Both the position numbers and the translations under genes were made by a program. Below the pieces are notes generated by a model. The model searched no databases and was not told the DNA's origin. It was given only the letters and a program-made list of their open reading frames with translations. A DNA stretch of 64,000 nucleotides from sequence record PV662128.1, one strand, 5' to 3'. Positions within the stretch are counted from its first letter, which is position 1; each line of letters begins with the position of its first letter. Below are positions 21,317 through 21,511 of the stretch, in pieces.

Positions 21317-21430
21317 GTTAAGGGTATTTACTTATCCCTACCCTTGGTCTGAGGGGAAGTTAAGCCTGCGGAGTACTGCAGTTGGTACGAGGAAGCAGGA
21401 AGTTGAAATATACAAGACATATTATCTTTG
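21270..21430 (+). ncRNA. Putative TnpB omegaRNA (scaffold plus guide); boundaries approximate
   Basis: After the stop, GGGGAAGTTAAGCCTGCGGAG...GAAGCAGGAA with CCTGC/GCAGG pairing matches the typical IS605/IS1341 right-end scaffold pattern. Confidence 0.65.
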
Positions 21431-21511
21431 GGTAAAGGGTTGGTATAAGGGGCCGCGCACCCCCTACCAGATGAAGCTCTAATCTAAAAATAAACCTTAA
21501 GGAATATACTA

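Follow-up and report, generated by a model that had tools for sequence, protein, structure and literature searches.

TnpB is thought to aid the persistence of transposons by cutting the empty donor site. In the ISDra2-type TnpB-omegaRNA systems of IS200/IS605 elements (PDB 8bf8/8exa), the RNA overlaps the tnpB 3' end and continues as far as the right end of the element, and the adjacent flank serves as the guide. In what has been called 'transposon non-restorative homing', TnpB would cut a co-resident plasmid or phage at the orthologous empty site, into which the element would be copied without TnpA; for co-infecting phages and plasmids this was put forward as a theoretical possibility in a 2026 review, which cited plasmid data (PMC13565253). 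With a co-resident phage genome as the recipient, transposase-free copying is so far no more than a theoretical proposal (PMC13565253), and no report of TnpB-driven homing between phages was found in our literature search. Small selfish nuclease genes lying between conserved genes are represented in T-even phages by the free-standing homing endonuclease genes SegF, SegB and Mob, which are present in some close relatives and absent from others; in genomes that lack the nuclease, the predicted target adjoins the place of insertion (PMC13565253). Among jumbo phages, a nuclease that acts against the transcription machinery of a relative infecting the same cell is also on record, namely the endonuclease of a PhiPA3 intron, a protein-guided nickase whose target lies in the coding sequence of the PhiKZ virion RNA polymerase gene (PMC12908238).

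The tnpB-omegaRNA cassette described here resembles the ISDra2 system in the domains, catalytic residues and full length of the protein, in the overlap of the RNA with the 3' end of the gene and its extension to the right end, and in the origin of the guide from the adjacent flank. It differs in lacking tnpA and a conserved left end, in having its left junction displaced from the border between TAM and target, with short duplications or deletions, and in residing in a lytic jumbo phage and using a phage promoter. The resemblance to SegF, SegB and Mob extends to position and to patchy distribution, but here the target would be set by a flank-copied RNA and not by a protein, and self-protection would come from loss of the TAM and not from polymorphisms in neighbouring genes. 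Whereas the PhiPA3 endonuclease is intron-borne, the phage cassette is free-standing, RNA-guided and, by prediction, directed at a promoter, and what was theoretical for phages in the 2026 review would have here a natural phage system with both occupied and empty alleles. We are confident about the anatomy, that is, about a free-standing tnpB-omegaRNA cassette that is inserted in an early-type promoter, past its core and ahead of its start site. The best overall explanation, which we favour with moderate confidence, is that this promoter-splitting cassette spreads by RNA-guided, intronless homing.

The window analysed, 64,000 nucleotides in length, comprises bases 62001-126000 of Raoultella phage VB_ZK_P1 (PV662128.1), a jumbo phage with a 257-kb genome. 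The closest phages, 96-97% identical over the region of the window, are Klebsiella phages Miami (genus Miamivirus), phiKp_32, KPN8 and YC1, and 'Stenotrophomonas' phage BUCTxx100. The features around the cassette, in window coordinates, are the following.

17879-20065, + strand: major capsid gene, phiKZ-type (Pfam PhiKZ_MCP).
20088-20121, + strand: intrinsic-terminator-like hairpin 3' of the major capsid gene, with a 15-bp stem and a T-rich tail, also present in relatives.
20129-20157, + strand: predicted promoter upstream half (T-tract ... CT) with its ATATTAT core (20151-20157), now ahead of tnpB; position-weight score 15.0.
20158-21425, + strand: tnpB-omegaRNA cassette, 1,268 bp, with the capsid gene to its left and the operon of 21512-26606 to its right, its limits taken from alignment to the five empty alleles (Miami, phiKp_32, KPN8, YC1 and BUCTxx100).
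20177-21316, + strand: tnpB, 379 aa (Pfam OrfB_IS605, Cas12f1-like_TNB and HTH_OrfB_IS605), with the RuvC D-E-D triad and the zinc-finger cysteines intact.
21260-21419, + strand (5' limit approximate): omegaRNA scaffold, overlapping the last ~55 nt of tnpB and ending at an invariant GACA, predicted from conservation of synonymous sites and non-coding sequence and from a consensus fold.
21365-21399, + strand: last scaffold stem-loop, the inner 5-bp stem of which covaries among paralogues.
21419-21425, + strand: second ATATTAT core, at the right junction, without the promoter upstream half; position-weight score -16.3 in total (upstream part -24.6, core +9.9).
21420-21437, + strand: predicted guide of 16-18 nt, (T)ATTATCTTTGGGTAAAG, starting at 21420 or 21421, from flank homology to the empty sites in eight cassettes.
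21440-21470, + strand: leader hairpin of the downstream operon, native, outside the cassette and present in all empty sites.
21512-26606, + strand: tightly packed downstream operon of three genes (ORFs 21512-22534, 22546-24216 and 24213-26606).

The product of the middle gene of this operon (22546-24216) is a homologue of the phiKZ nvRNAP subunit gp123 (PDB 7ogp_E, PHIKZ123; E 2.7e-10) and also matches PHROG 2943 'polymerase' (E 3.5e-146), so that the label 'nvRNAP operon', given to it in an earlier, sequence-only reading of this DNA, is justified. The promoter downstream of the capsid gene is insulated by the putative terminator hairpin at 20088-20121. The GC content is 54% in the capsid gene, 35% in the cassette (20158-21425) and 44% in the genome.

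All five relatives carry the insertion site, S1, in the empty state, with ...GGACTATATTAT joined directly to CTCTGGG... at the junction or, in a longer reading common to the five, ...AAGGACTATATTAT joined to CTCTGGGTAAAGGG... S1 is thus polymorphic for presence and absence at the same locus, being occupied in one of six phages. Because the 7-bp sequence ATATTAT stands at both junctions (20151-20157 and 21419-21425), the limits of the cassette may equally be drawn anywhere from 20158-21425 through 20151-21418. Just 19 nt separate the left junction from the tnpB ATG.

The ATATTAT element, called promoter-like in the sequence-only reading, belongs to a real class of motifs. A position-weight matrix of 51 nt was seeded on five intergenic ATATTAT sites and then iterated; at a cut-off of 14 bits it found 24 sites in the 257-kb genome, every one of them intergenic and on the + strand, the genome being about 92% coding by our own ORF calls. 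Enrichment of k-mers in intergenic DNA failed to single out the motif, which the position-weight scan did. Its consensus is roughly ACATG, a T-tract, CT-ATATTAT, six bases and G (usually GTGTAAA). As had been claimed, the same core occurs just upstream of tnpB (GACTATATTAT at 20147-20157) and ahead of the glycine-zipper genes (27445-27451). The latter is one of three further early-type promoter cores inside the window, the others lying at 15102-15108 and 56724-56730.

In jumbo phages with their own RNA polymerases, the early promoters have their AT-rich core near -10 and are recognized by the virion polymerase (PMC7598289); those of AR9, mapped by dRNA-seq, have the form AAATATATATTAT-(6N)-G(+1) (PMC5312081). 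The motif found here (...CTATATTAT-6N-G) is like these promoters of the AR9/phiKZ group in that its AT-rich core precedes the start by about 10 nt, and it is intergenic and oriented with the genes. It differs in the upstream ACATG followed by a T-tract, which is particular to this phage group. The site split by the cassette is a predicted early-type promoter of the virion RNA polymerase class, with G as its predicted start, and the 24 sites provide a candidate early-promoter consensus for Miami-like phages.

For scoring the junctions, the matrix was rebuilt without the tnpB junction. The uninterrupted S1 site of KPN8 then reaches 21.5 bits, only 22 genome positions exceeding 20 bits; the left junction, ahead of tnpB, scores 15.0, and the right junction falls to -16.3, nothing but the core and the sequence downstream of it being left there. 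It follows from these three values that the insertion splits a genuine promoter. The predicted start in front of tnpB is G20164 (core-6N-G), 13 nt before the ATG.

The right border of the scaffold can be placed by comparison of eight paralogous cassettes, which occupy eight different sites. Common to all eight are the 3' end of tnpB and, after it, about 105 non-coding nucleotides that finish with ...GAAGCAGGAAGTTGAAATAT-ACAAGACA. The tetranucleotide GACA (21416-21419) is identical in all of them, the following position agrees in three of eight (T, C, C, G, T, G, T and G), and beyond it identity is at chance level. Homology to the empty allele starts in each of the eight at the end of GACA or one base later. 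The predicted scaffold/guide border is therefore set at 21419/21420 or 21420/21421, with T21420, variable among paralogues, as either the last scaffold base or the first base of the guide. The sequence-only reading had let the scaffold end with GTTGAA (21402-21407) and had taken the next 20 nt (21408-21427) as the guide. Its coordinates and letters are correct, including ATATTAT at 21419-21425 within the 20-mer; the border it chose is 12-13 nt too early, since conservation among the paralogues reaches GACA, and 12-13 nt of its guide are conserved omegaRNA tail. Alignment with empty relatives, by which it had proposed to find the right end, fixed that end with five empty alleles and the eight paralogues. 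That the element ends at 21407 is hardly credible, as nothing beyond the position of the conserved GGAAGTTGAA block speaks for it, and 21408-21419 is common to paralogues at unrelated sites and missing from the empty site.

The scaffold corresponds to a 160-nt block, from about 21260, that is conserved even at synonymous sites, and its consensus fold includes a 13-bp hairpin. The inner stem of the last stem-loop occurs in six pairing versions (GUACU/GGUAC, GUGCU/GGUAC, AAGUU/GACUU, GGGUU/GACCC, AAGCU/GGCUU and GGGUU/AACCC), and this covariation indicates selection on RNA structure. We take the support for structure from covariation because the energy of the single-sequence fold is unremarkable, the whole scaffold folding no better than shuffled sequences (z -0.88). 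An Rfam search (E up to 1) over 19900-21700 found no omegaRNA family, giving weak matches to the capsid-gene terminator only. Fold, covariation and the sharp GACA end agree in showing what is expected beside a TnpB gene, a structured RNA that overlaps the 3' end of the gene and reaches the right end of the element. The hairpin at 21440-21470, to which the sequence-only reading had assigned a possible role in setting the RNA 3' end, exists, although it is weak (-11.8 kcal/mol; z-score 0.02 against shuffles), and a paired change in it, from GGGA/TCCC to GGGG/CCCC, distinguishes VB_ZK_P1. We reject it as the determinant of the omegaRNA 3' end, as it is native in all empty sites, has ordinary energy and lacks a T-run.

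The protein encoded by the window cassette has the domains and catalytic residues of a TnpB, and nuclease activity is predicted for it. Its RuvC fold, zinc-finger TNB and N-terminal HTH domains score 107, 63 and 33 bits in Pfam, all over the cut-offs, and it aligns over its full length with ISDra2 TnpB (PDB 8bf8/8exa; E 3e-54), the motifs GIDLG, IEDLN and HDRD corresponding to ISDra2 D191/E278/D361. All seven tnpB copies analysed are full length and retain the D-E-D triad and the zinc finger, and pairwise dN/dS values of 0.11-0.28 among them denote purifying selection. Such intact copies, with their motifs kept and dN/dS this low, argue against both decay and a nuclease-dead repressor. A protein scan of IMG/VR for TnpB returned only relatives at no more than 42% identity and one fragment.

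With the length of 16-18 nt borrowed from ISDra2, the predicted guide spans the last 5-6 nt of the core, the 6-nt spacer, the predicted start G21432 and a few bases more, corresponding to about -12 to +5 of the promoter of the downstream operon. The earlier idea that the guide covers this promoter thus survives with corrected coordinates, the promoter being uninterrupted in the five relatives, while the boundary and the 20-mer on which it was built do not. The guide sequence is preceded by GGACTA(T) in the empty alleles and by the scaffold end, AAGACA(T), in the occupied one; the left ATATTAT copy shares just 6-7 nt with the guide before the cassette starts. For these reasons the occupied genome is plausibly immune and the empty one a target, so that the uninterrupted promoter of cassette-free relatives would plausibly be the natural target of the guide and the occupied allele would be protected. 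Within the VB_ZK_P1 genome, the only perfect guide match of at least 14 nt is the right flank itself, which stands after the scaffold end and not after a TAM. A perfect match of 13 nt (ATTATCTTTGGGT) at KPN8 114,299, in a KPN8-specific segment of 346 bp, was taken as due to chance; it sits at the start of a small membrane-protein ORF.

Since the cassettes have neither a transposase nor a canonical left end, only the empty sites are available for reading the TAM. For clade A, to which the window copy belongs, the candidates are ACTAT, TCTAC and TCGAT or, one base earlier, GACTA, TTCTA and ATCGA, these three sites being too few to fix a motif. The five sites of clade B give CAAAT, CTTAT, TTCAT, ATTAT and AAAAT (NNAT), followed by G in all five empty alleles. 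The TAM of ISDra2 is TTGAT, and the candidate TAMs resemble its T/A-rich ...AT type. Further matches from the genome scan, cyanobacterial and archaeal and about 35-40% identical, were left out of this inference.

Apart from S1, seven sites were found, each occupied in one genome. VB_ZK_P1 has two more copies, phiKp_32 two, Miami one and BUCTxx100 one, KPN8 and YC1 have none, and the eighth copy lies on a metagenomic contig of a Miami-like phage (SABI01000451.1, 1,771 bp). This contig was binned with a Spirochaetia MAG; its flanks are 95-96% identical to VB_ZK_P1 130.3-130.8 kb, which marks it as a piece of phage DNA. An empty allele for every site is supplied by KPN8 and/or VB_ZK_P1. The TnpB copies share 62-87% amino-acid identity with dS of 0.65-1.7 and are old relative to the phages. 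Gain or loss at the sites must be recent, as each is occupied in one of about six phages that are 96-97% identical, and no sweep is visible, every insertion being a singleton.

A Y1 (HUH) transposase TnpA (PF01797) is absent from four phage genomes, control genomes having given matches in the same search, and no conserved left end of the IS200/IS605 style was found among the paralogues, the left ends of which differ. By these characters the cassettes are not canonical IS200/IS605 transposons. Instead of insertion exactly 3' of a target motif without duplication, as in IS200/IS605 elements, 2-12 bp are duplicated or 18-214 bp deleted at the junctions. Measured from the border between TAM and guide, the left junction is at +2, +2, +6/7, +8/9 and +12 bp at the sites with short direct repeats, and at -18, about -39 and -214 bp at the remaining ones, where native sequence was replaced. 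This displacement (-214 to +12 bp) indicates that the first arrival at each site was not a canonical IS605 insertion.

How the cassette could spread once a site is occupied may be envisaged as follows. In the relatives, the uninterrupted promoter would drive the operon of the nvRNAP subunit. In VB_ZK_P1, tnpB would be transcribed from the captured upstream half of the promoter, starting at G20164, and the downstream operon would be reached by read-through, which is a likely route because no terminator-like site was found between tnpB and 21512. During mixed infection, TnpB with its omegaRNA would cut the empty promoter allele just past the start site, and repair from the occupied genome would copy the cassette, which would amount to RNA-guided, intronless homing. 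We consider a function in homing or interference to be somewhat probable.

Sequence to the right of the junction may carry a trace of such an event. Within the first 85 bp VB_ZK_P1 has eight private substitutions, including a C-to-T change at 21428, and one deletion, and the five empty alleles are identical to one another across this stretch; elsewhere the rate of private changes is 0-4 per 100 bp. Such a cluster is what co-conversion of the flank with a more distant donor could leave. As a general signature of co-conversion, raised divergence of the flank did not hold up consistently at the remaining sites. Owing to the change at 21428, where all five empty alleles have C, the guide has one mismatch to each of them, at position 8 or 9. 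Dra2 TnpB needs about 12-16 bp of heteroduplex for efficient cleavage, and targets mismatched beyond about position 8 are bound and not cut (PMC12803034). The mismatch to all five known empty alleles would thus count against easy homing. Scans of IMG/VR and of a metagenome collection with exact patterns of the empty and occupied S1 junction, with C or T, gave no match, so no empty allele matching the guide perfectly (T at the 21428 position) was found there. Should the phage be nucleus-forming, cutting and recombination could both be impeded by the separation of nuclei and by selective import (PMC12908238).

Cassettes flanked by promoters and stem-loops are shuffled by recombination in T4-type phages. 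On this model, the copies described here would move by recombination within the shared promoter core, with TnpB uninvolved and retained for some other reason, and with the overlap of guide and promoter as a by-product of the cassette's position; we regard this as rather improbable, although several observations agree with it. Four of the eight cassettes (S1, S4, S6 and S8) start immediately behind an A(T/C)(A/G)TTAT core, all in one register, and share a left module (NNAGTYGGAGGAAY...ATG), which places G at the predicted start. The copies at S7 and S8 bring a core-like sequence of their own inside the left end, core repeats of 7-9 bp flank those at S1 and S4, and scaffold modules and protein clades are mosaic. 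Recombination among cassettes is indicated by a match across protein clades: phiKp_32 copy 1 (clade B by its protein) and the BUCTxx100 copy (clade A by its protein) have nearly identical 3' modules of the omegaRNA. However, the other four sites are not promoters, and purifying selection on the nuclease and on the RNA structure needs a function. Exchange in the core would explain arrival and not the retention of a guided nuclease, and it may coexist with homing. Taken in this way, the data suggest that cassettes arrive at new sites via recombination in the shared promoter core or microhomology and that homing spreads the cassette at the site. A wider generalization can be offered only tentatively and seems unlikely to hold in full: this tnpA-less TnpB-omegaRNA family of lytic jumbo phages would consist of homing genes that are also promoter traps, inserting between core and start of virion-polymerase early promoters, taking over the promoter for their own expression, guiding the nuclease to the essential promoter in co-infecting relatives that have no cassette and gaining new guides when they hop to other promoters by recombination in the core.

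It is also conceivable, if improbable, that the nuclease serves as a weapon which cuts the essential promoter of cassette-free competitors, or some different target, and reduces the yield of these competitors while the cassette is not efficiently copied. The location of the target ahead of the operon of an nvRNAP subunit would suit such a role, as would the singleton state of each insertion, and the action of the PhiPA3 intron endonuclease on the PhiKZ polymerase gene provides a precedent (PMC12908238). The evidence is however the same as for homing, from which this possibility differs only in the outcome of repair, not readable from sequence, and the mismatch at position 8/9 applies to it too. 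A nuclease-dead, TldR-like RNA-guided repressor of the promoter is very unlikely: a guide lying on a promoter recalls those of TldR (PMC13565253), but all seven copies analysed retain the zinc finger and the catalytic RuvC triad that a TldR would have lost, and VB_ZK_P1 itself matches the guide perfectly nowhere but in the right flank, which stands after the scaffold end and not after a TAM.

RNA-guided homing, which we favour, and phage-phage interference are directly testable, because near-identical phages carry occupied and empty alleles. These are cultured phages with both alleles at eight sites, half of which lie in early promoters and one ahead of an RNA-polymerase operon. If the proposal is true, the family would show natural re-aiming of a guide without transposase.

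Several single copies have features of their own. At S2 (VB_ZK_P1 174 kb) the insertion replaced 214 bp that are present in KPN8, and at S6 (Miami 238.5 kb) it replaced 18 bp constituting the downstream half of a promoter. The S7 cassette (BUCTxx100) stands between 12-bp direct repeats that represent the first bases of the guide, with one mismatch, and has in its left end its own terminator-like hairpin and an ATATTGT-6N-G element. At S3 (VB_ZK_P1 ~205,090) the cassette lies in a gene, two bases behind its start codon; since the scaffold tail (...ATATGCGACAT) supplies a new in-frame ATG, the product starts MRHFYD... and not MFYD....
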